Made by a program: the position numbers and the translations under genes. The notes below the pieces were generated by a model, which saw nothing but the letters and a program-made list of their open reading frames with translations, was not told the origin of the DNA and did not search any database. 64,000 nt of DNA, taken from assembly GCF_037042905.1 (NCBI RefSeq), contig NC_087246.1, positions 16,988,001 through 17,052,000 on the forward strand. The letters are read 5' to 3'. Every line of letters starts with the position of its first letter. The stretch's first letter is position 1. Positions 4,511 to 63,665 of this stretch are shown here, piece after piece. This DNA comes from Lytechinus pictus (lineage: Eukaryota).

Positions 4511-4584
4511 TCAACGGCATTCCCAGACCTTGATGGTTAGATCCACACTGCCTGTTATCACATATGGGGCGGACCGATGGAAAT
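4511..4584 (-). CDS. PAFAH1B1: LIS1 last coding exon
   Basis: [24 protein letters not shown] then TGA. Confidence 0.96.
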
Positions 4585-7500
4585 CTAAAATCAAGAACAA
4601 AATACAGAATAGATGTGTCTTTGAATGTTTGTATCTTGGTACAGAAAATGTAAACAATGTTTACAGTTCACCTTGTGATTAATCCTAAAAAGGACTGTCG
4701 AGATGGGGATAAAGAGAAGCTGATGAGAAATGAAATTGAACTGAATGAGTGGGAATTGACAAGGGAGAAAATTATAGATAAGAGGGACGAGTAGTCTTTT
4801 TGTGAGAACGGTAGAGAATACTAATGTATATCAGACTGGATATTTTGTGAGGACTAACAGAGGTGATATGAATTTGCATCTTAATTTTGGGGAGGAAAAA
4901 CTTATTTCTCAATGACTAGATCAACAGAAACCTTTTCCAAATCCTAGCTCTCTATACCAACAAATGAAGTCCCTCCATGATCATGATAAAAAGTAGAACA
5001 TACCATTCAAATCAAACAATATAAATAGCGACAACTCAGAAACAAAACAAATTTATGCAGCTGATGGAGGCTAAGGGAATCATTTGGGAGTCTACTTGTA
5101 ATTGGTTTTAAAGTTCAGCTGTTTGACTGACTTATCACAGCACAAAATTTGGAACTTACAACAATAAATCTTATCACTTATTGTTCCTGGATCAAACCTA
5201 AGCAGGGCAAGGACTACTTCCCCCATGACTTCTCCCTTTTGTGCTACTTTAATACACCCTGTAACTCAGCTTTACCTAGCGTAGTGGTGAAATGGTCATG
5301 GGCTGGCAATGTCTTTGCACAGCGTTTGTTCTTGTAGTCCCACACACGTAATGTTTTGTCATCAGCCACACTAATGATGAACTTGCCACCGGGATGAAAC
5401 ACAGCTCCTCTCACCCAGTTATCGTGTCCAGTCTAAAGAGATGAAGAGGAATAGGAAAAGGGATGCAAAATGTGAAAAAAATTCTATATTATTAAAATCA
5501 TATCAGATCAATGTAATGTGTTAGTTGAAACATTTTTAATTGTTCTCTCTTTCTACCATTGATGTTGACGTCAACAATTATTTTTTTAAAACTTTATTTC
5601 ATGTTTGTTATATATCAAATCTTTATTCCATCACATAGAATTCTTTTATCAGTAAATGTGAAGGTGTCATCAATAAATATCTTTTTTAAGGGAGACTGAA
5701 CTACAAGGAGCTCAAGCACAAAACCACCTTCTACCATAGGAATACATGCATTATAAGTCTTATACTTACATAAAACATGAGTGATCCAATCTTTATTGAA
5801 AAGGGAAATTGAAGGACACTTTACACATTTGGTTTTTTTTTTACCGGTATGTTATAAACATTTGATTTCTTTACAAATATTGTGGTATAAATGTGAATAG
5901 TAGCATTTATGATTCTAGAAGGTATATAACAATATATGATGAAAATGCTTCATCATGTGCAAGGACCTATGAACAACAAGAAATGTCCAGGTCTTGCTGC
6001 TGTTCAAAGTGAATGTGGTGTATGGCATCTAAGCTAGTGAATTGTGTTATTTGATTGGCTGCTAGCAAATCTGTCATAGAATTCTAGCGTTTGTGAAAGA
6101 CAAGGTGCCATCAAACAGGGCCTTGTACGTACCAAAGTCATGATGCAACCTCCAGCGCTGACATCCCAGATCTTAATAGCCTTATCACGTGAGCCAGACA
6201 CAAGGAATGGTGTAGAGCGAACTCCTTTCTTCTGCAAAGGTATTGACAATCAAACTCGATCAGTAAAGCAAATCCTTTACTTATGATCGCATTCCAAACA
6301 AACCATGCAAGACTAGGGATAGCAATGCTCTACACATTGTTGGCAATCATCCGGACAGTTTTATGTTGAGATGACAGTGTAAAACGTATTTCACAAAAAT
6401 TGAGTGTAAACTTTTCAAACTTTTCCACAGATTGCCAAAAATATATCTGAAAAATTATTAATTTATTCCTGTAAGACAGAAATGCCTAAGAGTGCAACTT
6501 TGATTTTCTGCAAAAAATATAATATTTTTAATTTGTTGACCTCAAATAATGGTTCAAACCCACAAAATGTTGCAAGAGCATTCATGCAAATGCACTGCAC
6601 AGGGGGATAACAAATGAAGCTAGTTAAGTTTCTTAACTTCATAGTAAAATAACATACTGTCTTTTCTGGACACCTTTTCACTTGAGTGCATGATAGCATC
6701 AAAATAAAGAGCACAGTTCAGCGCATCTAATTCCTGTTGCCTAAACTATTACATAAACTTGCAAACCAATGAAAACTCTCAAAAGGACACTTTGTTTGGC
6801 TGTTGAGCATTGTTACTATGCAAATAACAGTTTGATAGCAAGGATAATGCATCAGGGTCCTAATTGAGTACATTCTTTGAATAATTACATGAACAGCATA
6901 TGTGCGTCAAAGAAGAAAAAATTGCCATCTCAATGTTTTATGCATAACATACATGTACATGTACTCCTCAATCCACAATTACAAATCAACTTATCGCACA
7001 AGAAGAGGCTATGACACTAAGGAGGGGTGCACATGGATGTTTGGAAAATAATGATAAAATAAGTGTGATGATCAAAAGCTTGGTTATTCATAATACAAGT
7101 ACAAGAAAAATTATATATCTCCATATCATACTTTATAATTTCATCACTTAATTTGTAAGGGTTGCAGTTGATCTTCTTGAACTTCATATAATATAGAGCT
7201 CTACAAATAATCATAAGAAGTGGCAAGGTGTGAAATATTCAATGCACAATCGTACATAAGCAGGGTATGAACTGGGTATTAAGTGAAGAAGTGGTTTAAT
7301 TACAAAGAATGCACATGTATGTATCTTCCTGCATGTCATTCTCTCTCTCCAGCTCTACAAACCTTAAAGTATCTCTAAACTTTATTTATCTATAACCCTT
7401 TGCAAAGTATTATTCCTCATTTAATCAAAATTACTCAAACATGTTTGATAATCTTGGTGTCACTCAGAAAAAAATAAAAAAATAGGCAAAATGATGGAAC

Positions 7501-30279: not shown

Positions 30280-30735
30280 GGTGACTCTGTGGTCGAAGGC
30301 TGCTATAAGCAGCTCACTGTGAGAATCAAGTCCTCCTCCTACTCCTCCTCTATAAAACCATCAGAGTGATCTTGATTGGAAATCCACTCTTTATTTTCCT
30401 CTTCCTTTTGAATAAGTCTTGAGAATTTCAGTCTATTATTCCACGATAACCACTCGATAGCTTCTTCCACATACCCTACCTCCGTTCCATCTCACTTCAA
30501 CCTGTGGGTAAAAAATAAAAATAAAATATTTAGCCTAGCACTACAGGTAGAACCCCAATATATAATTTTCAATAAAATGATTACCCTATGGGTAACCTAA
30601 ACCCTCTTGTGAAACATTTTTTTCCATCCTATGAATTTGTGTGTCGTCTGCGACCCGATAAAATTTAATGCCAATATTGAGGCATACAGAACATCTTACT
30701 GCGTAAAATTCTAAATCATCGTAGGGATAACCATA

Positions 30736-42757: not shown

Positions 42758-44815
42758 AGCATTTCTATTTCTTGTCAAAGACTCAAAATAAGGGTTTTGT
42801 TGGAGATTGATATTTGTTTTCTATAAGAATGTTGTTTTATTCTGTGTTACCTCATACGAGATGTTGATATATATAGTACATCAAGTGAAATCAAACATAA
42901 CAATGAAGATGGAAACGTGATCAAATATAAAATATTTCACCACAATAAGAAAGAAAAATTCATTGGAATTGTAAAGTTTGGGTTTGTCATGAAAACAATA
43001 AATAATATTCATCTTGGCTACATGCAATGAGTGAGTTGATAATGTAATGGGCAATGGCAAATCTAGGGAGCAAGAAGGACACTTGCGATAGGTAGCACAT
43101 TAAGTGGGTGCAATAAAGGCGAAATTTAGAATTAAAAATAAATACATGTATAAGGAAAACAAAAGGATAAAAAGATGAAAATATAGGTAATAGTTTACTA
43201 TGATTATTAAACAAGGAAAGTACTTGCATGGAAATATTTTCATTTAAATTTGAAAGGAAAACCCCCAACTCTTTATCAAAGAGAAAAATAGGATTTCATC
43301 TCTAGAGTAAATGAATGGTGCACCTACAATGTAGATGTAAATGTAAGGTTTGAAATTTGTGAAATGTTAGATCACAAGTTTGAAAACTCATGAATTAGTT
43401 TTTGAGAAATTTTTTTTTTCAAACCTTGACTAAACCATGGCTCATTTTTTTATTTCTTTCATAATTTTAGCCAACTTTGCATTTACTTTATATTTCATAG
43501 TTTGTCATCATTATCATAAATTATAGCAGTGTAGTGCGCAAGACCACTTCAGTAATTACGGTAGTTCAAATATTTTCTGAGTTTCTAGCGATGATCTCTT
43601 CCACTGATTCAACTTATACTTGCTTTGTCCATCAATAGAAGTCACAGATTGACAAACTTTTTTGTAAGGTAGTACAAGGTAGTACATGTACAGCATGTTT
43701 GAGTATTGAGTAGAATGTTTAACCAATGAAAGTGATCTATAATCAAATGCAGGTTACTTTTACTGTCATTGTCAAGATCAGACACAATGTTTTATGGTAC
43801 ATTGTGTATGCGCTGCATTTATGTATGAATATTTCAAATATCAGTTATCAGTCTATTGTAAAAAACAATCTCTCTTTTTTTTTTAAATGTTCATTGTGCA
43901 TGTACTTCTGATTTTAGTTTAATTTATTATCTGAACTGATTTATTTATATCAATTATGGGCTATCAAATTTATTCCCAAGATGGAAATGAGATTGTTTTT
44001 CATCTTTGAAACCTTTTCCACAAGGAAGATTCATCATCCACCCTTACCCCTGGATAATCTTTAGACTAGAGGGTGTTAATGAAATTATTATAAGAAAGTA
44101 GAAAAAAAGTGAAAATTTTGAGACAAATTGGACCAGGAAGGGAAAAAGTTTCATAAGTAAAATCACTACAACTATGTAAACATCTGAAAAGTGGCAGGGA
44201 CAACTTGCTCATTATCAGGAATTAATGGCCTACCGGGTACTCAGAAGTATATTTTCATTGGACTGTAATAAAAAATAAAAAAATACCCTTATCCATCTGA
44301 TTTTGTTCAAACTTTCACATTTCTCAGATTTAAAACCGCTTTTCATTTGAGTTGATTCCCATGTAACTATATAGGAGCAAACCACTGCTTTAACACACAA
44401 GAATACAGAAATATTCAAAATGTCAGGCCTTCACAATCAAAATTTATTGCAAACCTTTTAATAAACATCAAAATCATAATTCTATTCACATAAAACATCC
44501 ATTCTGCTCAGTAGTATTAGACAACCATAATCATCCTACATATTCAAATTATAGAGAATAAGCAATTTTAACAGAAGACATGTATAATGGTTAACCAATT
44601 GATTTATGGTATGCTGATTCAATACTGTTATAAATGCATGGATGTATACAAGATAATTTCCAATTTTTTTTTACTCCACATTAAAGGCCAATTACACTTT
44701 CACAGATTCATACCCTCATTTAAACTTTTTTATACCGAGGGATTGGACTTACTTTTCATTTTAAGAATGAAATAAGGAAGTGTGCAAAAATTTACATTCG
44801 ATTACAATCTCTTAC

Positions 44816-45022
44816 GGGGTGTTGCAGGAAACATGCAATTGATTGCATGACAGTTTTAGGTCCTAAAATCAATTGAAAAATTATGCATTTCATAGTAAAA
44901 ATTTGTGATTGATTGATGATCTGATTCTTGTATCAGAAAGGGTAAATTGATTTGCTTAGTTAAAATTGATCAAATCACTTGTAAATTTGCTATTGATTGC
45001 AAATATTTCCTTGCAACACCCC
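44816..45022. mobile_element. Harbinger-like MITE
   Basis: GGGGTGTTGCA / TGCAACACCCC termini. Confidence 0.7.
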
Positions 45023-48000
45023 TTTACTGTTACACCGAAGAGTTGACAAATGTAAAGGGGCCTATTCAGGCTTAACATATTGAGGAAGTTTGATCCTCTG
45101 GTTGTTATTAACGTAGGAAGTTCCCCAAAAGGTTTTTATACTCAGACTGTTTTACCAAGGGAATGCTTCATGGAATAAATAGTGAGCAATTTTCACAGAT
45201 TGCTTGTAGGAAGCTCTTGAGATCCTTAATTTGTCAGTGAATATTACTGAAAAGATGTTTCTTAAAACATTTTAAATTGTCTACTGAAACCAAGTGTAGA
45301 AAGCCTATAAAGAGTAGCAGAATTCAGTTGTCAACGAATTGTCTAGCATGCAGTTAGCAGACAAAGGAGTTGTGAGTCAGCTTAAATTTTAGTGCCCAAG
45401 GTAGAATTTATATCATCAAAAAATCAGAAATCTGATGAAAAATGAAAAGATTGTTAAAAAAGGGAGTCTTATGGATAAACTGCTTTCTCCACATTAGAGC
45501 CAGAACTTGACAAAATGTTCATTTTCAATTGCAGAGCATATGTAAAAAGTTTTTAAGATATAACATAAGATTAGCCATTAGAAATTATTCTTTTAATATC
45601 TGTTAGGTGTACAAAGGATTGAAATACCTTAAAATTTGACAATAATTACTCAAATATCAGATAATAAAATTTTTATTAATTTTCTGAAAAGTACAATCAC
45701 ATTCATTAACAAAGTGTACATCTGTGAAATTTACTATCCCTATAATAATGTATAACTCGTTTGTTGTTCACCACACTGCTCATAACCCAGCAGCTAAATA
45801 AACATTTCCTCATAAATATATGAATGCTCAATTTCAATTTCACAATAACAATTTCGGGATACATTTATTTTCCTAAAATTTACATCTTTAATGCTATCAA
45901 ATTGAATTCAACTTTGCTCTGCTAAATCATCCAAATTTATATTTACTGTCATTAGTTGATTCTTCACCTGTAATTTAAAGAAGACAATACACATGTACTG
46001 CTATTCGAATATCATTAGTGACATAATACATATTAATTTCCCTCCTTTCTTCACTTAATACCAGGTGTTACAGATGAATCGATGTATGATCCTCTAACAC
46101 AAGCTAAAACTGGAGGGAGTATTTTTGTGAAAAACTGACAATAAGTGACAATCTATCTGACATTTTCAGACTGTTCTAGAGGAAGAAGAAAGTTGTTAGT
46201 GCAAGCTTAATATTTGTCTCGCGTATCAAGATTTTTTTTTTTTTATGTCATGAGTGAGCTTAATGAATATTGAAGAGAATAGAAATTCATTTGAAGAATG
46301 TAGTACAGAGTACTTCTTGCACATCATGTAAATGGCATATTGAATATTACACTATGCCTAGTTGCCGACTTAATTAATGGCAAGCAACATTTGGTCCCAA
46401 TTTTGAAAGGAAATCCAACATTGTTCATCGAGTGTGACAGCAGTTTTAAGTAAAAATTAAACAAAAATACCAAATCTGCATTACGATGTCTCAGTATTTT
46501 AACATATCCAATTTAGTTATCTCCCTTTATGTGTCATTCATGTCTATGCGAGACAGGAAACAATCACCTCGCTATTACATTTCTATTACATAATCAAATG
46601 AAAGGACACTCACTCACTCTATATGAGGTGGAAAGAAAAACAAAAACTTGAATAATGATGAACATCTTGCAAACAGTTCAAACAAAATAACACATAACAG
46701 AAATAGAAAAAATGATAAAAGATATGTGATAATGATGACAACTTTAATCAGCTTCAAACATACATCAATACCAATTAACGGGACTAGATGCATCACCAAA
46801 ATACAATAGAGATTAGAAAGATTATCTTGGTGGACATATTCAATATATTCTAGTCAAATATTCTTTCAATACATTACAACTGAAGCAATACTTTTGATAG
46901 CCTAGTGGATGTTCCACAAAGATAAATTCAAGTTAAACAAAAAATCACACCGAGGTGCACTTTTGCATATGTAATAGCAGGCTGCAACTCCTCATGACAG
47001 TACGGAAACAATGATAAAACCTCCATCGCAAAGGGCCAAGATTGACCCCTCCCCCCGTTCCTTCAGTTACTAGGTACTAGTAATTAGTTGTCCATCACAG
47101 AATATGAATATTAGATACGTCTATTTTCTGCACATTTAAGTTCATGAATAATGCCAAAGTTTGAAATTTTGCATAAATATTGGTCACATATTTGATTCTA
47201 TAATGCACATTAAGTTCAAATAATGTTAGAGATCCCATTTTGTTAAATATATTGCCCATACACATAGTGTGAGAGAAAAGAGGATAATCAACCAAGGATT
47301 AAATCCCAAAATATTAAAAAATTCTTGATGCTGAACCCCGACAACAAAAAGTTTAATTTTGAAATCAAATTCAAATTAATGTAAGTAAAACCTTACTATA
47401 CACACATTTTATATCAGTCTACATCTGAAAGAATACAAAACATTTAAGATTATGGCAAATACATCACTTACAATCAAATTATTATTTTCATTTACTCTTG
47501 TAAAAACCTTACACACATCACTCATCAAAACAATACTCTCAAAGACAATCATATATTGATTAAAATTGGTTTCAACAATCTTTATCAAATAATGTAATTA
47601 TTACATAATGATTTCCACTGTGCCAAAATATACACTCTTACATACACATCCAAACATATTCAAAATACCAATACCAGTGTCGTATGATATGCACAAACAT
47701 GGATATATAATATATCTATAGGTATTTTAAAGTGGGTCCGTTTCTAGAAACTGTTTAAAGTGTAACCTCTTGGTGGTCACAGAGGATCATGTGCAAAACA
47801 ATGAACACGATTCATCGAGACACCCATGAACTCTGACCTTTTCAAGAAACGGCTGCCCTCAAGGATTTTGGTTTAATATGGAAGACTTGGGTGTACTCAC
47901 ACAATATTTATTGCTCTTACAATGGCAAGGAGCATTATATATCTCCCCTACATCAATAAACTAAAACTCAGAAATAAGAGGACACTACCAACAAAAAAGT

Positions 48001-49509
48001 ACACTGTATATCATATATTTCACAAATAACATGGATTTTGCTATGAAGTGAGATAGAAGTCTACACAAAACTTATTGGAATACAAAGCTAGTGTATCACA
48101 TTCTTGACAAAGCATTCAATTTCAGTAAGAGAAATTTTACCTCCTAATTTTACCAACTTTCAAATAAAAATTGATAGAGAACAAACAGAGAGATATTCCA
48201 CATATGCATTGATATTGGTTTAAATTGAAATGCTATAATGAATACAGAATCATGAGTTATCCATCACCACTACATGTGAATTAAACTATTATTCAACATG
48301 GATTAGCAAGACAAGAAAGAACGCTTACTAACTCCTTATCAATCAATGAACTTTTTAAATATAAATCTTGACTTGCTTTCTCAGAATACTAGACTCATTG
48401 ATCGGAATGGAGGTCGAAAAATCGGTATAATTCCGCCAAAATCGGAATGGTTGGCAGGTATGCAGTAGTGGGAGAGGTGGTGCTTAGAATATTCAACTAC
48501 TATGCCAGCTAGAATGAAAATGACTACCTAAAATACATTGATGTTATATCGTAAATTGAAGTTCCCATATTACAATATGAAGTTCCTATGAAGTCAGGTT
48601 ATTAACATAAAAAAAGTTAAAAGATTGAAATGTTGTTCAACATTGGATATTTTATTTAACTGCCAGGAGACATGATGGGTTGTTGTTTAGGAACTTCATA
48701 GTTTTTGTTTATTTTGTCATTTGTACTTTATGAATGGCTTTATATTGCAGCCTCCACTGGCTGGTTTGTTTCTAGCATTAATGCTTACTTGTGAAATTGG
48801 GTATTAGAAAACTTGAATCGTACACAATAAGGTTGACATAAGAAGTCACTCTTAATCCAATAAACCAAAATGATTTCATCCTACACAACAGGGGACAAGA
48901 ATTTGAAAATAAACAATTTACAGCAGAATTAATTGACAAAAATATTAAAGCACCATAATATAACCAAACTGAATTGACCATATACAAAACCAATACACAA
49001 GTCTGTTTCACTTTTATTTTTAAGTAAACATATTCAAATGTTAATGATAAGTTGATTGTGATCAACTGAATTAATTAAATATTAAATGGTTTCTGTTACA
49101 ATGTGACACTGCTAAAACAAATTAACTTCAAAATAATGATGTACAAGGCTTAACCAAACTAAAAAATCAACCAATAAGATTTATCAACTGTTGTTCTGAT
49201 TAAAACAACTAATCAAAATAAAAGTGCATGTTCAAAGATAGGGCATACAATAAGAATCTATTTGTTGTTGAAGTATCAATGATGAAAACAAAAATCAAAT
49301 AAATATGCTGATGGGAAGTGTTTTTTAAAATCAGAATTACACTGATTAATTTTTTGTTAAAAATCTAACCCTGATTGGTGTGTAATTGCAAATTGACCAC
49401 CATACAATGCATGTATAAACCTCTAAAAGTAAAATTTATATCTTGCATCTTAAGTTCTGCACACCTTCTCAACAAAAAAGTAACCTTCCACAAATATAAC
49501 ACGTACCTG

Positions 49510-49666
49510 GGGGGCATTTCATGAAATGACTTGTCGGACGTTTTGTCCGACAAGTCCCATTTTATCCGACAGTTACCATAGGAACAGTGCCTCTCAGCCA
49601 ATCAAAATCATGGAAAGGTGTCAGATCTGACAACTTGTCGGATGTAAATATTGATGAAACGCTCCC
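49510..49666. mobile_element. Harbinger-like MITE in the probable CLUH 3'UTR, same family as 29285-29422
   Basis: GGGGGCATTTCAT / ATGAAACGCTCCC termini; CTG TSD. Confidence 0.8.
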
Positions 49667-49963
49667 CTGAAAAATAATGTAATCAAGTGCAGTGAAATTT
49701 GTCAAAACATAATTGACAATCATTTTGTATAAACCACTTAGCAAAAACTTGGCCTCATCAGGCATAAAACAAAATTTTAATTTATGTGCAAGAAAATGTA
49801 ATTCTACATCATTCAAACCTTAATGAGGAATCTGAGGATAACAAAATTCATCACATATAAATTCAACATATCTGTAAAATACAGGTTTGTCTACATATAT
49901 GTATACTCTGATATAAACTATGACTATCTAGGAGTATCATAGACTCTAGGATCCCTCGTATTG

Positions 49964-50126
49964 TTATCTTGCCACTTCCTGAGGAGCAGGTGATGCGTCT
50001 GCTGGCTGGGACTCTGGGGGCGGGCTGGCGGGATCTTCCACTTTCTCGGTGGGGTTGGTCACTGTGACTTCTTCTTTGTTCTCAGGCTGCGCTTCTGTGA
50101 CAGTTGCTTTCTGAATACCTCTGATG
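49964..50126 (-). CDS. CLUH: CLUH last coding exon (acidic, Pro-rich tail)
   Basis: cccacag| acceptor in phase; [19 protein letters not shown]...APQEVAR then TAA. Confidence 0.82.
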
Positions 50127-53100
50127 CTGTGGGCAATAAAGTAAGAAATTGTATTATTATTTTCTTTGAAATACAAATTGATACATCGCAAACATGAATG
50201 AATGATAATGGATGTAGAATAAACTAAGAAATTTTATTTGACTTTCTGACTTGTTTTGCATGAAGCTTTAAACAAATAATGTGTGAATTCATATCAATAA
50301 GTAGTTTGAAATAAAAAATACTGAGTGAGTCTCTGGCAAGTATTTGCTTGAAACCATTAATTTGTTGCATCAGGGAGACTGGGTGGTCCCTTCAAAAAAG
50401 CTTGTGGGAATTACAGAGTTCAGCAGACAATGCATCCAAAAATCATGACTGTACGTTTCACATATTTTTCTTGGAACATAACTTAATCTATCCAATCACT
50501 TAAATAGGTAATAGACCAAATGGTCAGACAAAAAAATGGTCATTAGACCAACTGCTATTAGTCGAAGTGACTCAAGACCAGTGAAGGTACTATCACCAGC
50601 TGGGAAGAATGATAGAACAACTATTATCTGCTGGGATAAGTGATATACAACTATTAACTGCTGGGATGAGCGTTAGTACAACTATTACCTAAATTACCTG
50701 CTGGGATGAGTGATAGTACAACTATTACCTGACTGGAATAAGGAATATTCCATTGATCATATTGAGGGTTTCAAGCACACTGCTCATGGATGGATGACTG
50801 ATAGGAATAGGACGTAGTGCTGCCTTAGGACCACCTCGTTTGATCTCATTCATCTGAAACGAAAAAGTAAGGATTCAATTACTTAAACTATTTTAGATAA
50901 TTCATTTTAAGAATATGTACTCAGAATATTAGATCTTATTAATCTTATGAGTACATATGACAATCGACTTTCTATGTATGTTTTTCGATTTAAACCTTGA
51001 GGGTTAAGGATTAATAAAAAAAGACATATTCCGGATAACTAATTAAAAGATTGAGTTTGCAGTGACATAGCAACACATCTGATTTATTGGATAATATGCT
51101 CTGTTCTAATTTTGAAAGCCCCCCCCCCCCATCCACCCCAGTAATGGCCATCACACCTTGCAATTTTTTCTAAACAAATAGAAGTACACTTACTGTTTTT
51201 TGAAGAGTAACGGCTTGTTGTGTGAGGTAACTCAGACATTCTGAACTCTCCTTTGTCTTCTCATGATTATCACCAAACTAGAGGAGATCAAAAGAAATGA
51301 GGAGGTAAAGATTCAGGCCTGTATTCTGAACTCTGGTTTAAATTAAACTCTGGTATTAAGTTGTGGTCTGTGGACACCCAATTGTGACACAAATATCTCA
51401 CAGTAAATGTTTTTTTATCACATTTTGTGATGAATTCATTCACTTTTTTTCTTCAAACAACAACTCAAGTATTTTTCTACACAAATCAAGCATTGGAAAA
51501 AAAAAACAGTAAAGATTTAAAAAAAATATTAAAAAATTGTAGGTATTTTCAGTATACAGATGATACATAGATGTGAGTGCATCGGTAGGTTTTGTGAGCA
51601 TAAGGGAACTATGGAACTGTTATGCGCTTTGTTGGTCTAGACTAGTTTCCATAGTTACCGCATGCTCACTAGTCCTACCAATGCACAAACAAACCTGTGT
51701 ATCATTTTGTTATATAGAATGGTGGAATATTTTGGCTAAAAATCAATTTTTTACAACCATGCATAAGTAATTACCGACGCATGGCGTGCCATGCATCTGG
51801 TAAATTTGTTATGCATAAGTAATTACTGGATGCATGGCTGGTCATGCATCCAGTAATTACTTATGCATGATACCTATTCTATAATTCCCCATAGAGCTCA
51901 GAATTATGGCCATTGAGATTCAAGTATAGAAGAACTAATTTCCAAGTTTCCTCAAAATGTTACCCCCCTTCCCCCACCCCCTGGGATTCTCTAAAAGAGT
52001 TTCAAAAGGTGGAATTCTCCAGAAGGCTCCCTGTAAAGGTTCCCCCTAATCTTGTGCAATAAATGATTTCAACAAATAATTCTAACCTGTTCGCGATAGA
52101 TAGTGTATGCATCCTTCTCATTTCGTAATGCTGAGCGGAAATCACCACAGCACGAATGCGTTCTTGCAACAAGGTGGTATCTGTTAGGGCAAAATTGAAA
52201 TGAGGAAATATATCTCAAACACTATTAAAATCAATAAGGATGCTAACAGAATCTTTGGAATTCAGATGTATGAATTAAATTGGTGTACTAAGACCTGAAA
52301 TGTCTTGGCGGAAAATTTGTTTCTTAAGTATATTGCAAATAAGAACATCTCACAGACAGAATTTCAAACCTAATATCTTCATGCAAGAATTTTTTTTTAT
52401 CTATGTTTTTGGCATAATATCTGTCTTCTATTAAATTGAAAATAAAAGAGGAAAGTTATTTGCTCCTAACTGAAAATATTCCAAACAGAATTGGTAAAAC
52501 TCAGTTATTAAGCATGAAAATGTATTAGCTTTAAAGCAAAGTAAAAACATTATCTTAAATAAACGGAGAAACCCTAATGAAATAAGTTTCTTACCTGTGT
52601 GCTGCCTTTAGACTCTTAGCTCCAAAGTACTTGATGTTTGTCTCCAATGCCTTCTCTAGAAACTTGAGAGCCAGCTCAAACTGATTAACACCATGAAGAA
52701 CTAGACCAATATTACTCTGCAAAAATATTCATTAAAAATAAGAAATATGTAACGTATGTAGATAACTGACAAGGAAAAGCAGTGTTGGGACCAAAGACAA
52801 ATAAACGCATGAAAGGAAAGGCTGTTCCTTCAGCTCTGTGCAGTTGTTGTTGTACGTGCAACACACTGACTGGGGTTACCAATCATCAAGCAGTATTCCT
52901 TTCTATCCAACCAAATCTAAATAAATATGTTAAAAGAATTTATGTATACACATGGCAATGAGATACAGAAGTTCTCAAAATACATTTAGAAATTTGAAAT
53001 TTACATCTTGAAAATTTAATTTCACAGCAGAATGTGCCATTGAATGATTCACAGGGGAAAAAACCAGATAATTGCAAGACAAAAGACATTCTTTTCTTGT

Positions 53101-56100
53101 TAAGAGCATACCACATTATTATCTATCACTCCCATCCACTTCCAAATGATTTGTATTTATATATCATTACAGTCTTTACAGCACACAAGCACATTTCAAT
53201 ATTAGATTTGTGTTTGTTTTAAAAATTCTTTGGTTTGATAAGAGTATATTCTGATTAAACTCACATCGAAGAGAGCCATTTCAGGATGATCCTCGCCGTG
53301 GATAAGAAGCGTTAGATAACGAGCCCTGTACATCAGCTTGAGGGCGCTCACTGCCTGGCCCGCTGCAAACCTGTAGAGGGCCAGATGCATCTGTACAGAA
53401 AAGAAAACATGCCTCATGGTTTGAATTTTTACAATCAAATTCAAGGGACTGTTTTTATAAACAGCAAATTATCTCATCCTACAGGGTTCAATGTAAAAGA
53501 AGAGTACCTGTATATTACTCCACAGTGGCTGTTCGCATAAAAAATACATGTCTTGGTAACCATAATAGACTGAACAGAACAGTTTTTATACAATTACTGT
53601 GTAAATGATAAGATATGATTTAAGAAATGGAGACCTAGAATGGATTCAATGTGACAGGGGGGCATTTCAGAAAGCTATTAGTAAATTATGCAAATTTTTA
53701 TATACAAATAGTGACCGTTTCTTGTGCTACATGCATACCACAAATGTTCCTTGCAATTCTCATGAAATTTTGATAAACAATATTTACATTCTAATGCTTG
53801 TTATTTCAACAAGAAATTTTGAATTTTTAAATTGAGCACTAATCTTGCGCAAGAAAAGGCCATAAGACATGTGAAAAACTGTACATAACTTAGTTTTATG
53901 AAACCCAACCCAATCCCTTAGGCAGTGAACATGGAGAAAAGAAAAACATGACAATAACTCACATATTCTGTGATGGTGTTTGGATGATCAAGACCGTTAC
54001 ACCTCTCGCTCATCATGACTGCCTTGTGTTGCATCTCAATGGCTTCACTCTGCTCACCCATCAGGTAGTGTAGTCTGGCCAAGGTTCGCATGCAGGCTGC
54101 AATCTCTGGGTGCATAGGTCCATATACATTGTTGAAGAGGTTCAGAGCTTCGCTGATCAGCTCAAAGCCTTCACGGAAGCAGCCTGGTGAGAAAAGGAAT
54201 CAAGAATGCAAATTGAGCCTTGTTGAGACATGACACAATGCTAAATCTCATAAAATGTAGGACATGAATATTCAGATTGCTCACTTACCAGTATATCAAT
54301 ACGTATTTATAAGAAAATCGAGAACCTATATTCAATCTTTACTGAAACTTCATGTGTTCTTGACAAGGTTCCATAACATTTGCTCTGGCGTCAATTGCTC
54401 CATTATAAATTCCACACTGTTCAAATGACCAACTTCAACCCTGGACTAAACTCTATACCCTACCGTAAACCCAACATAAAACCCTATTGCAACCCTACAT
54501 CTTACACAAAACAAAGACCTAAGCAAATGTCGCAGGAGCACATGTCATGTCACCCTTTACACGGCCATTTTTCCAGCAACCTACCTTGCTGTATCTTGGT
54601 CTGTCCACTCTGGAAGAAGTGATAGGCGTCCGATGCGGTAGGATTGATGTGTTTGACCTTTGGGAACATGTTTAGGATGTCATTCTCATTGAAGGGCGGC
54701 TTGTTTTTGGAGTCCAGTTCGTAATCTCTCAAGAGTAGCTGGACACCAAGCTTGGAGCAGAACTCCCTGAGAAGGGTCATCTTCTGAAGGTTGTAACGCT
54801 CTGTGACGGAGTCTATGCTTTCACTGTAGGATAAAACAAGAGATGCTGTGGTTCAATTGACAATTCCTTGGATCCCAAACCATAGGGTTCAAACCCCATT
54901 GCAGCACCACAATCCACTAGTAATTTATTAACCCACGGAGGTTGTGTCTAAATTTATATAGTTTCTCTTAATCCTGGTAATTAGCAATTACATATGGAAT
55001 ATCATAGGCAAGGCTCGACATCACCTCGGGCAACCATTAATGAAAAAATATTAAGTTATGGTGGCCCGAATCGGGCAACCAATAATTTTCAGAATAGCGC
55101 AATTTTTCTCCCCATTTTGCACGCATTTATCAACTTTCTACAATTCAAATTGCAAGCCAGTTCGTCGTGCGCCCTTTTTGTTGATCTACACACAAACACA
55201 CACACAAAGTTGACCTACCGCTATAGCATTAAGTAGCTTTTATCCAGCCGGCTGCGCCGGCCGGCTGGCGTGAGCTTTGCATGCTTGAAGCAGCTGTGCG
55301 TTAGCTGCTTACTCAGACTCAGGGAGCTGCGATACGAAATGTTGCTGCTAAGAAATCTTCCACAGAACTATGAAAATCCAAGTCAAAGTCACATTTTACA
55401 CCAATGAAATGCCCTTCTACAGACCTTTTTGCTAAAATCTGGTGTATCCTGATTATTTGCAAGCATTAAAAAGAGGAATCATGACCTTTCTTTTGACTCA
55501 AAAAGACCGATTTCCAAATGAAAATGATATACATAAAAACACATAGGTGAGTACATCACAGTCCCACATGTGCATTTGTATGTTTTTACTTGGTTTCTTT
55601 CGAAGCTGTGTCTTTCCGGTCTTTTCTAGCCAAAAATAAACAGACAGTTACTTTCTTTCTTGTTTATAAATGATTTCTTAAACAACTCTTGAGAAAGAAA
55701 ACACTTTGGGAAGGCATTTCATTAATATGAAATGTGAATTTTTCCAACATTTTGGCAAATTTAGGGAAGGAATTTTCTCACACTTTTTTTTGCTGTTTTA
55801 TTTTCTTTCATTTTTTTTTACAGTGGTTAAACCATTTATACCCATTTATTCATTTTTAATGTTTTTCTTTATATTTTTCGGGCCACCAAACTTTAATATC
55901 GGGCCACCAAAAAAAATTATTCAAAGATTTTGGTGGCCCGAACGGGCCACCACCAAAAAAAGTTAATGTGGAGCCTTGTCATAGGAAAGAGGAGAATCAA
56001 GACCATTTCCAGTGCATGTTGTGGTGCAGTCATTTAACAAATGTTGATTTAACTTCAAGCTTATTATTACACACAATGAATTGGCAATGTAACAGACACA

Positions 56101-59100
56101 AGAAGATTACTGTGTGTACAAACATTCAATATTAAACTAGTTGATAGGAAAATACACTGTATTCAATATCAGAACATTGAAAACAATTGCTAGGCCATCT
56201 TAAAAACACATCTTAGATGTAATTGTACCAATTGCCAATGCAACAGAAATAACTAGATCACTGTGCAAATACCCTCTGTATAAGACTAGTTGATAGCAGG
56301 TAATCAATATCAGAGGGATAACCATCTTGAAAACCAATCTTAGATGTAACTTGTTTTCATGACCTCAAATCAACCATAATATACCACAGCTACTTTGAAC
56401 CAACTCAAGACACAATACTAAAAAGAGTGTTCATGGATTTCCATATAATCTTAATATATATACCTACCAAAAAGATAATAGATGTAATTTCCGCTTCTCT
56501 TTAAAAAATCAATATTATACCACAACATTTACAAAGAATAAAAATAATCTCAGTGTACTTCCAAGCATTCCTGGATTTTCAATAAAGATCAAATTAATAT
56601 CCAATATTCAAACTAAAATTCATAATATATTTCAAAATATTTGTGAAAGGGTATATGTATCAAGACTACCTTACTGCACATAGCCTCATGACAGTGTATT
56701 CACTGTAGGCAAGAGCTACATGGAGTTTGATTACCCTTCAAAAGAAATAAGTATCCTGCTTACCATTTAACCTTATAATGGAAGTATTCCTTGCATTCAA
56801 CCTTGATACTGCTCCACAGGTCTGAGGGGGTGAGACTACTCCATGATGTGTTTTCTATTTCATAAAGAAAACACATAAATGATTAATGAAAAACGAGTAG
56901 GAACTTACACACAAATAAAGAAAATCAAAATTAACTATTGGTTAGCATATGTATCCACTTCCAAAATCTTCCAAAGGACAACTTCACTACATCAAACTGT
57001 TTATTATATGAAAGTTACCAATTTTTTAATAATTTATTTTTTAGACCAAATATACTATGTCGTGTTCATGGCTTTGAAATTATGCATATTTTCCATACCC
57101 CCATCTTTTCAGATATTAAAAAAACTAAATTTTTTAGGGATAAACCATTAAAATTAATTAGATAAAAAGAAAATTCAATACCTTGTTTTTCTTGGAAATG
57201 ACTTTGAACTATCTGTATAATCTATATTGCTGTGATAGTACATACCTTGTCCAAGTGAAAGAACATATCGTATCCTCTTCTTATTCTTCTTCTTCTTGTG
57301 ATGACCATTACTCAACTACAGTCAACAAAATGAAAAGTGATAAGGAATGGTCTTGATTAAACATGTTTTGGGGTCTTAAAGGTCCTATGACACAAAAACC
57401 ATCTTATTTTGGATATATATCTATTCTTGGGTAGTTTTACTTGAAAAATACGAATTTGCCATCGGTGACTGTGTATGACGAACCGGTGTTTTGGGTATTT
57501 CATGGGACGAACTTCAACAGGAACGCCCACTAAAATTTTCGAAAAAGTTGGTCGATCGACCTGTCAATCATTGTGACGTCATCAAAAGAAAGATTTCTCA
57601 GCTATGCAGCCGGACCCCCTAGTTATTGCACATGTTTCTCGTGTAGTTGCTGTTTCGACCGAGCTCATCCTTAACGGATTTTTAAAGATATTTATGAGGT
57701 TTTGATCATGGCTGCAGCATCGTCATAAGCTGCGTCTGATATTCTTCAGACTTTGAAGATTCAGGTTCTGAATATTATTCCAGCAATTCAATTTATTTAC
57801 TTTGAATTCACACGTGCAACCACAATAGGCACTTCACGCTCCAAACGTCAGCAACACTCAACAGATTCTTCCCCTGACGAAAACCAAATTGGGCTGAATT
57901 TTTTGTGGGCGTGGCGAATTTGGCTCAATTTTCAATATAAAACTGCCTTTGAACCTAATGTGGGATGTTTTTCGGGTAAAATTTTGATGGAATCATTATT
58001 AGTAACCACTAAGCTAATGAATAAACCAGCATCTTTGCTGTATTTCATAGGACCTGGATATACATGGATTATTGGTTGGGTACAAGAGAGGTGAGGTGGA
58101 GGAAAAAAAGGAACCCAAAGGTATGTGTATATAGACGGTAAATCAATCTTAAAAATAGTATATCATAAGTCCTGAAAAAGTTCATGAACCATGCAGATGA
58201 ATAAAAATAATAAAGGCTAGAAGAATTATACTATAAAATCTTTAACAATGACTTTGTGATTCAATACACATTGTTATTGACTAGATGTGAAATGGAAGAA
58301 TATTTTAACATTGAATACTGGAAGAGGGAAATATTACCTACAACCTGGGAATGAACTACATAAACAGGAAAGAAAATGCCCCATAAGAGGTTCAGTTTCT
58401 TACCTCATCATCTCCTTTCGGTGGAAGTGGGTTTGGTAGGGATGACAAGAAACAATTGAGGAAATGACTGATGGCAGCAGATAGGCTCGTCATCGGGATG
58501 CCTTGCATGAATGCTTTGAAAACATGCTTCACTGACCGACATATCAACTCAGTGATAATAATACGCTGTGAAGGAATGTGAAGTATTATCCATCTTTATT
58601 CAATAATAAAAAGTTATATAAATTGTTGGTTTAACTGTAAATTTTTGGCTTAACACTTTCAGCCCTACTACTAAATAAAAGTATTCTGTTTCAGCTTGTC
58701 TCTCATTACAAAATACAAATGAATAACATTAACATAACATTGGCCTGCCTGTTGAATAAACTTGTGATTACACCTAACTACTTAAAATCAAACACAAACC
58801 ATTGACTGTCACTTTAGATTCATAGAATATCACATTGTGATTTATTTTCCTGAATTATGATTAAATGTACACATTATGTAACAGATTCAAGGGTCACGCT
58901 AAACTTGAGATTGATATAATTTCCCATCTTTTAACTACACAATTTAAGACCAACCTCAGTTTAAAGTTGATCTGAATATATTGCAACACTGTGTAAGACG
59001 GCCCCCTGTATATTACCTGCCCAAAGCATATGGATTTCGTTATACTCACATAGAGGTAGGAGAGGTTTTCACAGGTGACTACCTTCTCTGCTAAAACACC

Positions 59101-62100
59101 CATGTAGCGAATGTTGATGCCTCTGCAAGTTAAATCATAGAAAATCTAATGGTAGAGTATTCATCATATTGAAGCCTGTCTTTAGCTTTCATAAATCCCC
59201 CTAAATGCATCTATCAATATTCTAATCCATTACTAGATAATATGAATGTATATGCCCTAAAACAGTTAATCTGTGAAGGATATGAAATAAAATAAGTTTT
59301 CCAGATAAATTTGGTGAATTTACAAGGTCACTTTTTGGAGCCGATCTTGCCCTAAAATGACCAGGGTCATAACAAGGCATTCTTTTTTATTTATTTATTT
59401 GAAATCCATAAATCAGATTTATTATCGATGGTTACTTCCATAAAAACTTTGATTTTGATGAGCTATTGAGTGATGTTTTCATAATCACATCATCCACTAA
59501 ACACAGGAGTAATGCCAAAAATTTGTTCACAAATTATTATTACCTCCTATTAAAGCCTCTTTATTTACCACATCATCCTGGTTTTGTATTTCATTCTCCT
59601 TTGTAATGAGAAATAGGACTTTACTAGAGTAATGAAGTAATTTCAAGTTAGAAAAGTGTTCTTTTGACATTACTTTTTAATGATGTGAAATAAACCAGAG
59701 AAAATTTCTGACTTAGTGAAGTCACCAATGCAAGGTCAACTTATAATTTGTTTTGCATAATTCAGGGTGCTACGTAACTTTTTTGAAGCACTTGCCCAGT
59801 GGGGCAAGTAAATTTTCAAATAGTTGGAAAATACTTGCCCGAATATAGATTTCACTTGCCCAAAAAAATCCTTCAAAACAAAGTTTTATTGCTTCAAAAC
59901 AAGTTATAGCCTTATAGTTTTACATACCATACCACTGACGGCTTTAAAAATAAATTTTTCAACATGACTACTGATGTACCTTGTAGTTGTATTTCTTTTT
60001 TTTTAATGATTTTTATCTTGAACATGACAAAATATATGGTAAATATGCTCTTTAATTAGTTTCCTAATCTCATATATTTTCCATATATTTTGGAGGGGAC
60101 TAGGACACACAATAAAAAAAGGGGAAATCACTGAAAATAACCAGAGAAAAAAAATAAGAAAGGGGGAGAGAATGAAAGAAAAAAAGTAAGAAGAAAGATA
60201 GAAAGGAAGAAGAAATAAATAAAGAAAGAGAGAGAATGGCTGCGGGGAAGAGAAAGATGGAAAGAAAGAAAGAAAGGAAGAAAGAAGGGAGAGGAGGAGG
60301 GAAAGAAAAAAGAAAGAAAAAAAAAATAGAAAAAAATGAGAGGAAGAGAAAGGAAGGAAAGAAAGGAATTAATAAAAGGAAAAAAAGAAAGAAAAAAGGT
60401 AAACAGAAAGGAAGGAAAAGGGAAAGAAAGAAAACGAGAGAAAGGAAAGGAAGAAAGGAAGAAAGAAAAGGTATAAAGATAGATGGAAGGAAGGAAAAAA
60501 AAGAAAAAAAGAAAAGATAGATACAACAAAAGACAGAATGAAATGAAGGAAGGAATGAAGGAAAGAGATGAAGGCAGAAAGAAAAAATAAGGAAGAAAAG
60601 AAAGGATGGATGGAAAAAAAAGAAAGATCAAAAGAACAAAAGACCAAAAAAAAGAAAATCAGAAAGAAAGAAGGAAAGAAGAAAGAAAGAAGGAAGGAAA
60701 GAAAAAAAAAAAAAAAAAAAACTGAGGGGAAGAGAAAGGAANNNNNNNNNNNNNNNNNNNNNNNNNNNNNNNNNNNNNNNNNNNNNNNNNNNNNNNNNNN
60801 NNNNNNNNNNNNNNNNNNNNNNNNNNNNNNNNNNNNNNNNNNNNNNNNNNNNNNNNNNNNNNNNNNNNNNNNNNNNNNNNNNNNNNNNNNNNNNNNNNNN
60901 NNNNNATAGATGGAAGGAAGGAAAAAAAGATAGAATGAAAGACAGAAAGAAATGAAGGAAGGAATGAAGGAAAGAGATGAAGGAAGGCGGAAAGAAAAAA
61001 TAAGGAAGAAAAGAAAGGATGGATGGAAAAAAGAAAGATCAAAAGAACGAAAGACAAAAATAAAGAAAAACAGAAAGAAAGAAAGAAAGAAAGAAGGAAA
61101 GAAAGGAGAAAGAAAGAATGAAAGACCAAAAGAAAGGAAGGAATGAAGGAAAGAAATAAAGAAAGAAATGAAAGAATGAAAGGGATGAAGAAAGTAAGGA
61201 AGAAAAAAGACAGGAAGAAACGGTAAAGAATGGATGGACGGAAGGAAGACAGTAAGAAAGAATGAAAGGAAGGGGAAAATGAAGGAAGGATTAAAGAAAT
61301 AGGTAAACAAAGGTTGGATGGAAGGAAGAAAGAAAAGAATGACAAAAAGAAAGACAGCTATAGTAACAGAAAAAATGAACAAAAGAAGGAAGGAAATTTA
61401 AAGAAATAAAGAGAGATTCAAAAGAAGGAAAGATAGGCAGAAAGAAAGAAAATAGAGGAAGAAAGCTCAAACTATCCAGTCATAAATAAAGAAGAAAATT
61501 TATCAATTTCCTTGGCTAAAAAAAATGGTTACGAAAGAAATCACGTTTATCAACATACACACAAATGCATATGTGGGACTGTCAAACAATGTATTTCAGT
61601 GTGTGCGATACAGACGATCATTCGAAACCCGATCTTTTTGAAGCATAACAGAAGTGAAAATTTCTCCTTTTACTGCTTACAAAGGACAGAGCTACCACCA
61701 ATTTTTAGGAAATATGGACACTACAAGAATTTTCATTGACAAGAAATGTGAATTTTGACAGTTCTGAGGGAGATTTCTTCCTGAGCAAACTTCGTTCGTG
61801 CAGCACCGTACTCCGTATGCATCGGCTGCGTGGACTATGCGCTAGCTAGCTAGGTATGCTAGACTGCCATTGATTCTGTGTGTGTACGTCTCTGAGCTGT
61901 GTGTTTATTGCAGAAAATGGCGCAAATTTTGCAATTCGAAAGAAGAAATTAATGATATTGCTTTTTTGTCTCTTTTTCGTTTCTATATTTTGATGGTTAA
62001 ATATGGGGAATCTTTCTAAAATATAATTTCCATAGGAGAATTTTGCTTGCCCGATTCGGGCAAGCAGTTTTTGTCTTTGCTTCAAAACACTTGCCCGACT

Positions 62101-63665
62101 CTAACTTTTACTTGCCCCGGGCAATCGGGCAAGCGCTTATGTCGCACCCTGCATAATTTTTATAATTTGAATTTATATTGGATATGGAGCATTGACCCAT
62201 CTACCACAAATCTATAATCAAAGAGTGATAAGGGGGGTAAGATCGTACCTCTGATGTAGCATTTCTACCAGTGTGTACCCATCAAGGGGGGCTATTGGAT
62301 ATGGAGCATTGACCCATCTACCACAAATCTATAATCAAAGAGTGATAAGGGGGGTAAGATCGTACCTCTGATGTAGCATTTCTACCAGTGTGTACCCATC
62401 AAGGGGGGCTATGCTGTGCTCCTTACATTCCTGGACCTAAAAGAGGTTGAGAAAAGAAATAAAAAACATTCAGAATTCATGTGATATCATCTATCAAGTT
62501 CATTTGAATCATAATAAGAGAAGGATTAAACATCAACTGGATTAGAATAGCTGCAATCAAAAGAAATGGTATAGACATTTTCAGAATATGATGCAAAAGA
62601 ACACAATTGTAACATTAGTCCACTGTACACCTGTAGGTGGTGTCAGAGGCATTGTTTTCGCCTTGTCCGTCCATCCCATTTTCTTGCCTATGCATAGGAG
62701 TGATGATCTGATTAGCGTCAAAAGACACATGGGTCACACATTGAAGGTATTGGAAACATATCAAGAATGAGACTAAATAGAGAAGTTCAATATTACTCAC
62801 AAAAGTTGGAATCTGGACTGCTACTATGAAACGAGCTGCATCCTTTAGTAGCTTCCTTTGTTTTCCTAATGTCTCTGCCTGTAAAAAAAATTGTTCCACT
62901 ATGTCAAATAAAGATCATAGTATTTGGATTAATACTCTAAGCCCTTTACAAATACAGTATATTATAACTCCGGTCACAAGACTTTTGCATGCCAGTACAA
63001 AATATATGCACTTTCTCCACTCCATAGGGAGCATTCCAACAGGAATTTCAAAACTGCATAGGCATTCACATTTCAGACAACTTTACACAAAACTTTATGC
63101 ATGCCATGGCTGCAACATGTTCTTAGGCACTATGTAATCTACATAGTGATATATCATTTAGGACAAGGAAGGGTCATCAATCATGCGTGAAGTGTGGATT
63201 GAAACCTTGCCAAAGGATACCAGGCTGTGGTGGGATTCAACACAAGGCACTCTGACTACAGAATCACTTCACCAAAACGCTTCTATAAATTCTCATTGTC
63301 AATAAATCATATATTCAATATCTTGGCAATTTAAAATAGTATGTAATATGATCCCCAATATTGCAGGGTCTCCATTGTAATGCTCTCAACTTATCAAGAC
63401 TGGAGCAATTCATTAAGTGAAAGAAGAATGAAGACAAATTGGAGTAGGACAAACAAAAATTACAATTACTTTTTGGAAGTGCCCATTTGTGTTCTTGAAC
63501 AATTATGTGGAGTTGGACCAAATGATTTCTAACCTACCTCAGATGGGGCATGGATGACTCCATCAGCATAGACATCAGGATTGAATCTAACGTCAAACTC
63601 AGCACTGCTCAATGAACCAGCAGCCTGGGCAGCTAAAGCTATCACCTCTTTATGGCTCGGATCAA
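49964..63665 (-). CDS. CLUH: Clustered mitochondria protein homolog (CLU central domain and TPR region); 3' part only, about 614 aa, gene continues beyond the window
   Basis: Join of 63538-63665, 62801-62878, 62366-62436, 59050-59122, 58404-58565, 57246-57315, 56764-56854, 54585-54823, 53963-54183, 53265-53390, 52595-52716, 52087-52180, 51194-51277, 50729-50853 and 49964-50126. Motifs include [43 protein letters not shown] and [19 protein letters not shown]. Confidence 0.96.
50590..50732. repeat. About 30-31-bp tandem repeat (about 4.5 copies) beginning at a CLUH splice donor
   Basis: ctgctgggatgagtgatagtacaactattac units. Confidence 0.85.
50729..50853 (-). CDS. CLUH: CLUH penultimate exon
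   Basis: [41 protein letters not shown]; |GTAATA. Confidence 0.92.
51194..51277 (-). CDS. CLUH: CLUH exon
   Basis: [28 protein letters not shown]; |GTAAGT. Confidence 0.94.
51811..51868. repeat. Perfect 26-bp inverted repeat with 6-nt loop
   Basis: atgcataagtaattactggatgcatg-gctggt-catgcatccagtaattacttatgcat. Confidence 0.92.
52087..52180 (-). CDS. CLUH: CLUH exon (TPR)
   Basis: [31 protein letters not shown]; |GTTAGA. Confidence 0.94.
52595..52716 (-). CDS. CLUH: CLUH exon (TPR)
   Basis: [40 protein letters not shown]; |GTAAGA. Confidence 0.95.
53265..53390 (-). CDS. CLUH: CLUH exon (TPR)
   Basis: [42 protein letters not shown]; |GTGAGT. Confidence 0.95.
53963..54183 (-). CDS. CLUH: CLUH exon (TPR)
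   Basis: [26 protein letters not shown]...DHPNTITEY; |GTGAGT. Confidence 0.95.
54585..54823 (-). CDS. CLUH: CLUH exon
   Basis: [34 protein letters not shown]...[11 protein letters not shown]; |GTAGGT. Confidence 0.95.
55009..55978. mobile_element. Non-autonomous DNA transposon with 7-bp TSD
   Basis: CAAGGCTCGACAT / ATGTGGAGCCTTG termini; exact TCATAGG duplication; gggc(a/c)acc subterminal repeats. Confidence 0.85.
56764..56854 (-). CDS. CLUH: CLUH exon
   Basis: [29 protein letters not shown]; |GTAAGC. Confidence 0.92.
57246..57315 (-). CDS. CLUH: CLUH exon (basic patch)
   Basis: [23 protein letters not shown]; |GTATGT; phases fit neighbouring exons. Confidence 0.85.
57380..58055. mobile_element. 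Kolobok-like non-autonomous element
   Basis: TTAA-AGGTCCTATGA / TCATAGGACCT termini; right TSD not intact. Confidence 0.55.
58404..58565 (-). CDS. CLUH: CLUH exon
   Basis: [22 protein letters not shown]...[11 protein letters not shown]...GDDE; |GTAAGA. Confidence 0.94.
59050..59122 (-). CDS. CLUH: CLUH exon
   Basis: [24 protein letters not shown]; |GTGAGT. Confidence 0.92.
60140..61465. repeat. GA-rich low-complexity tract (GAAA/GGAA-like)
   Basis: Almost purine-only on the plus strand; similar blocks on each side of the gap. Confidence 0.92.
60742..60905. other. Assembly gap (164 N)
   Basis: Run of N. Confidence 0.99.
62176..62409. repeat. Perfect 117-bp tandem duplication covering a CLUH exon 3' end and donor
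   Basis: Identical units at 62176 and 62293 with TAT microhomology at the junction. Confidence 0.93.
62366..62436 (-). CDS. CLUH: CLUH exon
   Basis: [24 protein letters not shown]; |GTACGA. Confidence 0.92.
62801..62878 (-). CDS. CLUH: CLUH exon
   Basis: [26 protein letters not shown]; |GTGAGT. Confidence 0.92.
63538..63665 (-). CDS. CLUH: CLUH exon
   Basis: [42 protein letters not shown]; donor |GTAGGT. Confidence 0.92.

Follow-up and report, generated by a model that had tools for sequence, protein, structure and literature searches.

The genes LIS1 (PAFAH1B1), METTL16 and CLUH lie side by side in a stretch of 64,000 nucleotides from the genome of the sea urchin Lytechinus pictus (C2:16988001-17052000 of the 812-Mb assembly, hereafter the window), and their arrangement was compared with that in other animals. 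The base composition of the window (approximately 35% GC) is eukaryotic, with short exons and long introns. LIS1, a dynein regulator, is encoded on the minus strand; METTL16, an S-adenosylmethionine-sensing N6-methyladenosine methyltransferase, on the plus strand; and CLUH, of which the window contains only the 3' 43%, on the minus strand. A first-pass annotation, made from the sequence alone, had read the three genes in this order and orientation with no gene between them, and this was confirmed by Pfam and PDB searches, by exact mapping of the CLUH protein and by checks of open reading frames (ORFs) and RNA reads. A vertebrate origin of the window had been named as grounds for rejecting the ancient linkage; the source is an echinoderm, and the annotated L. 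pictus CLUH maps to it exactly. Across the whole assembly, the family signatures of the three genes (LisH_PAC1, Methyltransf_10 and the CLU domain) were each found at a single locus, so the orthology of LIS1, METTL16 and CLUH is unambiguous. Since three particular single-copy genes adjoin one another, the probability of a chance arrangement is negligible and the linkage is therefore inherited.

The coding sequence of LIS1 runs from 30279 to 4514 on the minus strand, as traced through ORF translations. It matched LisH_PAC1 (E 1e-10) and WD40 in Pfam and the LIS1 structure in PDB (E 8e-52), and one exon was approximately 82% identical to residues 39-134 of human LIS1. A LIS1 orthologue is expected to have an N-terminal PAC1-type LisH motif, a coiled coil and seven WD40 blades ending in VKVWECR, and the gene agrees with this definition. 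The coordinates of the coding exons are limited by the ORFs and are approximate: 30279-30247, ~24703-24626 (LisH), ~18509-18222, ~17212-17120, ~13930-13757, ~10640-10540, ~10000-9880, ~6220-6120, ~5432-5277 and 4586-4514, the last ending in VKVWECR and the stop codon. With the blade exon for residues about 135-164 placed at ~17212-17120, all segments of LIS1 were located.

The 5' end of LIS1 was resolved with RNA-seq reads from three runs, which were mapped to positions 30247-36246 only, the METTL16 exons lying outside this interval. Exon 2 (30247-30499, minus strand) contains 5' untranslated region (UTR) and the start codon at 30279; its coding part comprises 11 residues and ends at a phase 2 donor, CT/GTAAGT. 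RNA depth over this exon was approximately 80, counted on the minus-strand-consistent mate, with a splice junction at 30499. This junction joins 30499 to 34116 (GT..AG, minus strand) and was crossed by 33, 69 and 48 reads in the three runs. It leads to a non-coding exon 1 at ~34117-34246 on the minus strand, whose 5' end is approximate and which marks the transcription start region; RNA depth was 14-26 in the bin 34047-34246 and zero beyond it. Within the LIS1 5'UTR and exon 2, a C>T difference from the assembly was seen at 30487 in every read of each run, and mismatches at 30274, 30441 and 30468 were heterozygous or run-specific. These mismatches are ordinary polymorphism between individuals.

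METTL16 is encoded on the plus strand from the ATG at 36295 to the stop codon at 42755-42757. Its exons were placed at 36295-36621, 37582-37716, 38473-38739, ~39409-39468, 39939-40022 and ~40660-40815, followed by a terminal exon that extends to 42754. Exons 1 and 3 matched PF05971 (Methyltransf_10), and the methyltransferase domain of human METTL16 in PDB was matched with E 2e-38. The catalytic motif NPPF is retained in exon 3, as MCNPPFF. With this domain and motif, a single copy and a C-terminal exon of 325 amino acids where an extension resembling the vertebrate conserved region would be expected, the gene has the features of a METTL16 orthologue. The 325-residue exon had no match in Pfam, and a homology search with it returned one partial match only. 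A minisatellite lies in a METTL16 intron (~40830-41200); its units translate as repeats resembling CSQCVHSVFTV in several frames.

The annotated L. pictus CLUH protein (P0173) mapped exactly over 1421 of its 1424 residues, in 29 coding exons. The gene begins with an ATG at window +89114, beyond the right edge of the window, and its last codon is at 49967; the window holds coding exons 15-29 (residues 811-1424; 49967-63663, minus strand), with Pfam matches to eIF3_p135 and TPR_12. The coordinate 63665, at which the first-pass annotation ended, is thus an internal exon boundary of CLUH and nothing more. The precomputed Pfam architecture of the full protein agrees with what is expected of CLUH/Clu1, namely CLU_N, CLU, eIF3_p135 (CLU central) and TPR domains in approximately 1300-1400 amino acids. 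One exon upstream of the window edge (window +65284 to +65733) encodes 150 residues (660-809) with a high content of Glu, Lys, Ser and Asn, and these were only 29% identical to the protein of the hemichordate Ptychodera; this exon looks like a lineage-variable disordered insert. A repeat of approximately 152 bp resembling a short interspersed nuclear element (SINE) was observed in a CLUH intron at 62000-62155, with more than 2200 first-look candidates in the genome, many of them 99-100% identical.

The sequence is interrupted once, by a run of Ns at 60742-60905 in intron 17 of CLUH. Low-complexity purine-rich (GAAA/GGAA)n sequence of more than 1 kb surrounds this gap (60100-61400), and the assembly probably broke there because of it. 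A gap flanked on both sides by low-complexity repeats is a place where a mis-join could have created the adjacency of the three genes artificially. The evidence effectively refutes this explanation, which we regard as having next to no probability. The gap is flanked by the CLUH exons for residues 880-902 (62433-62365) and 903-926 (59121-59050), which follow directly on each other in the annotated CLUH of L. pictus; the Ptychodera flava orthologue is also contiguous at this point, so that no CLUH residue is lost. LIS1 and METTL16, together with the fifteen 3' coding exons reported for CLUH, lie on uninterrupted sequence to one side of the gap, so that the claim of adjacency is unaffected by it. 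In addition, spliced RNA reads back the exon structure at the 5' end of LIS1. The independent assembly of the acorn worm Saccoglossus, described below, has the same layout of LIS1 and METTL16, and a published catalogue places CLUH beside METTL16 in that species.

LIS1 and METTL16 are divergent, with their 5' ends facing each other across a spacer at 34247-36294. The spacer is approximately 2.05 kb long, or approximately 1.5 kb without a young miniature inverted-repeat transposable element (MITE) that is inserted in it. It resembles a CpG island, with an observed/expected CpG ratio of 1.0-1.05 vs 0.45 for the whole window, a value that fits the expectation for an unmethylated promoter region. 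No locus-specific RNA reads from the three runs were found at 35847-36246, so either METTL16 transcription starts no more than approximately 50 nt from the ATG or too few reads of this gene were sampled. The MITE (34776-35326) is approximately 550 bp long with terminal inverted repeats of approximately 46 bp; 4916 first-look candidates were counted genome-wide, and the scored copies were 94-99% identical, with thousands of copies put at 97-99% identity. The only other strongly covered stretch of the interval (34.65-35.65 kb) consisted of imperfect RNA reads on both strands, whose loose ends fell at 34776 and 35325, and this cover is made up of reads from many copies of the MITE. The RNA reads of the three runs revealed no further spliced transcript between LIS1 and METTL16.

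METTL16 and CLUH are tail-to-tail, separated by a spacer of approximately 7.2 kb between stop codons (42758-49963), which must contain the 3'UTRs of both genes and which harbours dispersed repeats. This spacer was checked through its ORFs alone and not through reads, and no Pfam match was found in them. In the window as a whole, the 24 intergenic and intronic ORFs gave no credible Pfam match, and no Rfam family or tRNA was detected. One dispersed repeat is present in two minus-strand copies, at 29068-29328 in intron 2 of LIS1 and at 49368-49601 just past the CLUH stop codon; the ORF translations of the two copies have a motif in common, an 11-letter stretch followed by PP.

To the left of the window, the 3' neighbour of LIS1 is EIF3C, on the plus strand at about -26600 to -10600 in window coordinates, with collinear matches to eIF-3c_N. 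An uninterrupted reverse-transcriptase ORF of 548 amino acids (RVT_1, E 4e-33) was observed on the minus strand just outside the window (-1804 to -161). A second open frame, of 434 amino acids, lies within the span of EIF3C (L009:7246-8547) and has a weak RVT_1 match (E 4e-4) that is under the curated cut-off.

The neighbourhoods of CLUH or METTL16 in other species were examined in annotated flanks of up to 10 kb. The CLUH references came from an exhaustive search, and METTL16 orthologues were retrieved with a profile of the stacked METTL16 exons of the window, an unorthodox procedure whose identity values relative to the first row carry no meaning. In Saccoglossus kowalevskii, the divergent pair was recovered: the LIS1 start exon is at L019:8697 on the minus strand and the METTL16 ATG at position 10001 of the same contig on the plus strand, 1.3 kb apart. 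The Saccoglossus start exon encodes an identical 11-residue peptide followed by a splice donor, on the strand opposite to METTL16. A third instance was found on a metagenome contig (L029), with the LIS1 start at 372 (minus), the METTL16 start at 1855 (plus) and 1.5 kb between the start codons. The METTL16 of this contig was 45-49% identical to ambulacrarian and vertebrate orthologues alike, and its exon 1 is split by an additional intron, both of which indicate that it comes from a different animal. The earlier proposal that the head-to-head pair is ancient is therefore upheld by three lineages, the urchin, Saccoglossus and the animal represented by the metagenome contig.

The position of CLUH was more variable. 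In the sea star Asterias amurensis, LIS1(+) precedes CLUH(+), its end lying 8.4 kb upstream. In the teleost Parambassis ranga, CCDC92(+), CLUH(+) and LIS1(+) follow one another in this order, and the start exon of LIS1 is 9.4 kb past CLUH. The run CCDC92-CLUH-LIS1 of human 17p13.3 is thus also found in a teleost. In many fishes and sharks, the contigs that carry METTL16 and CLUH were equal in size, and this was counted in favour of linkage. In the pig, the order is METTL16, PAFAH1B1, CLUH, CCDC92 (PMC4736284). The mammalian order METTL16, PAFAH1B1, CLUH, which the first-pass annotation had given for human, is borne out by this pig interval and by the listed human positions (PMC11876076). In the urchin, the three orthologues directly adjoin one another, as they do in the human Miller-Dieker region at 17p13.3 (METTL16, PAFAH1B1, CLUH, CCDC92B). 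Unlike in mammals (METTL16-LIS1-CLUH), the urchin order is LIS1-METTL16-CLUH and the outer neighbour is EIF3C. As to the strand orientations of the human genes, METTL16 and PAFAH1B1 are taken to be divergent. Human EIF3C is presumably on a chromosome other than that of the 17p13.3 trio. Linkage with no more than 4-5 intervening genes in several taxa, which defines an ancestral microsyntenic block, was found in Echinoidea, Asteroidea, Hemichordata, Teleostei, Mammalia and the animal of the metagenome contig.

These arrangements modify two further proposals of the first-pass annotation. The pair had been suggested to have flipped as a unit relative to CLUH; the order does differ between urchin and mammal, but a flip would be only one among several rearrangements, given those in sea star, teleost and crinoid, and because these differ from one another the ancestral gene order cannot be polarised. 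Nor does the trio behave as a fixed unit, since CLUH is tail-to-tail with METTL16 in the urchin, 3' of LIS1 in the sea star and 5' of LIS1 in the teleost.

Conserved linkage of this type has been surveyed previously. Irimia et al. (2012) reported 595 ancient pairs of non-paralogous genes, in which more than 12% of the genes of the bilaterian ancestor take part and among which 5'-5' pairs and short spacers are enriched (PMC3514665), and Robert et al. (2022) found that ambulacrarians keep most bilaterian blocks (PMC8851819). Among the listed rows of supplementary file 4 of the latter study, block 6671 ("Bilateria novel") places the Saccoglossus gene models of CLUH and METTL16 next to each other. 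The CLUH-METTL16 linkage is thus already catalogued as bilaterian-ancestral, though without discussion (PMC8851819). LIS1 is not among the catalogue rows listed. The third member that these rows give for the block is xylosyltransferase-like, and no such gene was found near the urchin trio in searches with PF02485 and PF05686 as candidate families; as far as the listed rows go, the urchin trio therefore differs from block 6671 in having LIS1 and in lacking a detectable xylosyltransferase-like member. Like other metazoan microsyntenic blocks (PMC3514665, PMC8851819), the trio consists of unrelated, non-paralogous genes that are neighbours across phyla and have lost collinearity. No paper was found in the literature on the divergent LIS1/METTL16 pair or on an element in its spacer, and LIS1, METTL16 and CLUH are unmentioned in the supplements of the echinoderm regulatory paper that was searched.

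When the urchin and Saccoglossus spacers were compared, a single match rose above shuffled controls. This candidate conserved non-coding element of 24 nt, ACACGTTGAAAAATTACCCAGAAT, is at 34239-34262 (+) in the window, where it overlaps the LIS1 start region (blastn-short, E 5e-4). Its Saccoglossus counterpart, ACACGTTGAAACATTACCCACAAT, at L019:9591-9614, is identical at 22 of 24 positions and has the same orientation relative to LIS1 and METTL16. The element is unique in the urchin genome, with up to 2 mismatches allowed. In a control of 616 kb of unrelated animal DNA, one equally good 24-mer was found, an A/T-rich near-homopolymer, and the empirical expectation of such a match by chance in the 1.27-kb Saccoglossus spacer was approximately 0.002. 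No copy was found in public metagenome contigs. The evidence from this alignment for a functional element is suggestive but modest, and the element may serve LIS1, METTL16 or both. It may resemble a Staf/ZNF143-type site.

Taken together, these results are probably best explained by a retained ancient animal linkage composed of a firm divergent LIS1/METTL16 pair and a loosely held CLUH. The linkage would go back at least to the deuterostomes and probably to the bilaterians. LIS1 and METTL16 would be transcribed outward from a short, CpG-rich spacer of the unmethylated type, and a chromosomal break within this spacer would probably cut off promoter-proximal elements from LIS1, METTL16 or both, so that the pairing would tend to survive. 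CLUH would stay in the neighbourhood without a fixed place or orientation, its partner being changed repeatedly by small local inversions, as might be expected if its link were weakly constrained or had simply not yet been broken.

Several observations weigh against this interpretation. Four other metagenome contigs, with 1.1-3.5 kb upstream of METTL16, contained no LIS1 start exon. In the crinoid Antedon mediterranea, METTL16 is between GOSR1 and EIF3C, and CLUH is on the same chromosome at a distance of approximately 195 kb. Neither of the two genes has a LIS1 within 10 kb, and the LIS1/METTL16 pair has been lost there. The 10-kb flanks of CLUH also contained no exon of LIS1 or METTL16 in Ptychodera, Diadema, Branchiostoma belcheri, Owenia, Saccostrea and Hydra, negatives that are weak because a 10-kb flank is small and the genes are large. 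The 24-nt element was not found upstream of METTL16 in the crinoid or upstream of LIS1 in fish, and where it is conserved it amounts to one short match at the empirical expectation given above. The start of LIS1 near 34246 and the METTL16 ATG at 36295 in the urchin are approximately 2 kb apart, including the 550-bp MITE, an apparent distance beyond the classical limit for a bidirectional promoter, which is less than 1 kb between transcription starts. The 5' ends of LIS1 and METTL16 in human are approximately 80 kb apart, and at such a distance a shared core promoter cannot explain retention in humans. The listed positions of human METTL16 and PAFAH1B1 are approximately 190 kb apart (PMC11876076).

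Two further observations were made at the edges of these neighbourhoods. EIF3C, the 3' neighbour of LIS1 in the urchin, is 1 kb downstream of METTL16 in Antedon, which suggests that a looser EIF3C/LIS1/METTL16/CLUH neighbourhood persists in echinoderms. In Branchiostoma belcheri, the gene upstream of CLUH (L015:1-5531) encodes a helix-loop-helix (HLH) protein of 805 residues, in which a zipper-like segment and a long tail rich in Pro and Thr were noted. This gene might be the MNT orthologue; MNT is assumed here to adjoin METTL16 in mammals.

In an alternative explanation, no function is involved, and the genes are early-animal neighbours that have simply remained unseparated in slowly rearranging lineages while small inversions shuffled them. 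For the link to CLUH, such neutral survival is a serious alternative. The order and orientation of CLUH vary across urchin, sea star, teleost and mammals; in the crinoid the genes are less closely linked or have come apart, and in amphioxus, annelid, oyster and Hydra no partner was seen near CLUH (within 10 kb); most ancestral blocks are in any case kept by ambulacrarians (PMC8851819); and pairs of this kind number in the hundreds (PMC3514665). As an account of the whole locus, neutral survival is plausible enough to be kept in view, although we do not expect it to be the correct one. It does not readily explain why the divergent spacer is very short (1.3-2 kb) in three distant lineages, why a unique 24-nt element is common to two of the spacers, or why conserved 5'-5' pairs are enriched over controls in published surveys (PMC3514665). 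In the favoured explanation, the spacer would serve as a promoter region for both genes, and the linkage would owe its survival to selection rather than to slow decay.

The LIS1/METTL16 pair probably shares promoter-proximal sequence. It resembles the head-to-head pairs with bidirectional promoters, such as HSP60/HSP10 (cited in PMC3514665), in being divergent, in its short CpG-rich spacer, in the housekeeping type of its genes and in the conservation of its orientation. It apparently differs from them in that the usual distance is less than 1 kb, compared with approximately 2 kb from the LIS1 start to the METTL16 ATG in the urchin (approximately 1.5 kb minus the MITE), and in that the mammalian spacer has expanded to tens of kilobases. 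A stronger version, in which the shared promoter dates back at least to the Ambulacraria and possibly to the bilaterians, the 24-nt element co-regulates both genes, and this coupling has kept the pair together for more than 500 million years, is conceivable but seems to us rather unlikely.

The first-pass annotation had instead proposed a cis-regulatory constraint over all three genes. In this explanation, a single long-range regulatory architecture of the genomic-regulatory-block type, with enhancers located inside neighbouring genes, would hold the trio together. Regulatory blocks have been documented to keep microsynteny conserved, the trio is adjacent in both urchin and mammals, and LIS1 has long introns in the urchin (e.g. 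3.6, 5.5 and 6 kb). However, blocks of this type are anchored by developmental transcription factors, and none of LIS1, METTL16 and CLUH is known to be one. CLUH switches partner, side and orientation between lineages and is far from METTL16 in the crinoid, and no conserved non-coding element was found besides that in the promoter spacer, to which the comparison was confined. The evidence for constraint is restricted to the LIS1-METTL16 spacer, with its short length, its CpG ratio of 1.0 and its one 24-nt element, and a regulatory block spanning the trio is accordingly considered improbable.

The locus therefore adds one clean and well-documented example to the several hundred ancient linkages known in animals, and is a fairly ordinary case among them; the linkage is of a well-known kind, and no new kind of system is revealed. 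It does correct the picture of a frozen trio, in that the back-to-back LIS1/METTL16 arrangement is the durable part and CLUH is a loose companion that has been moved by local inversions. The locus is medically familiar, as it corresponds to the core of the human Miller-Dieker/lissencephaly deletion. As L. pictus is genetically tractable, its 2-kb spacer with the 24-nt element offers a small, testable model of whether a shared promoter region can preserve the adjacency of genes over very long periods.

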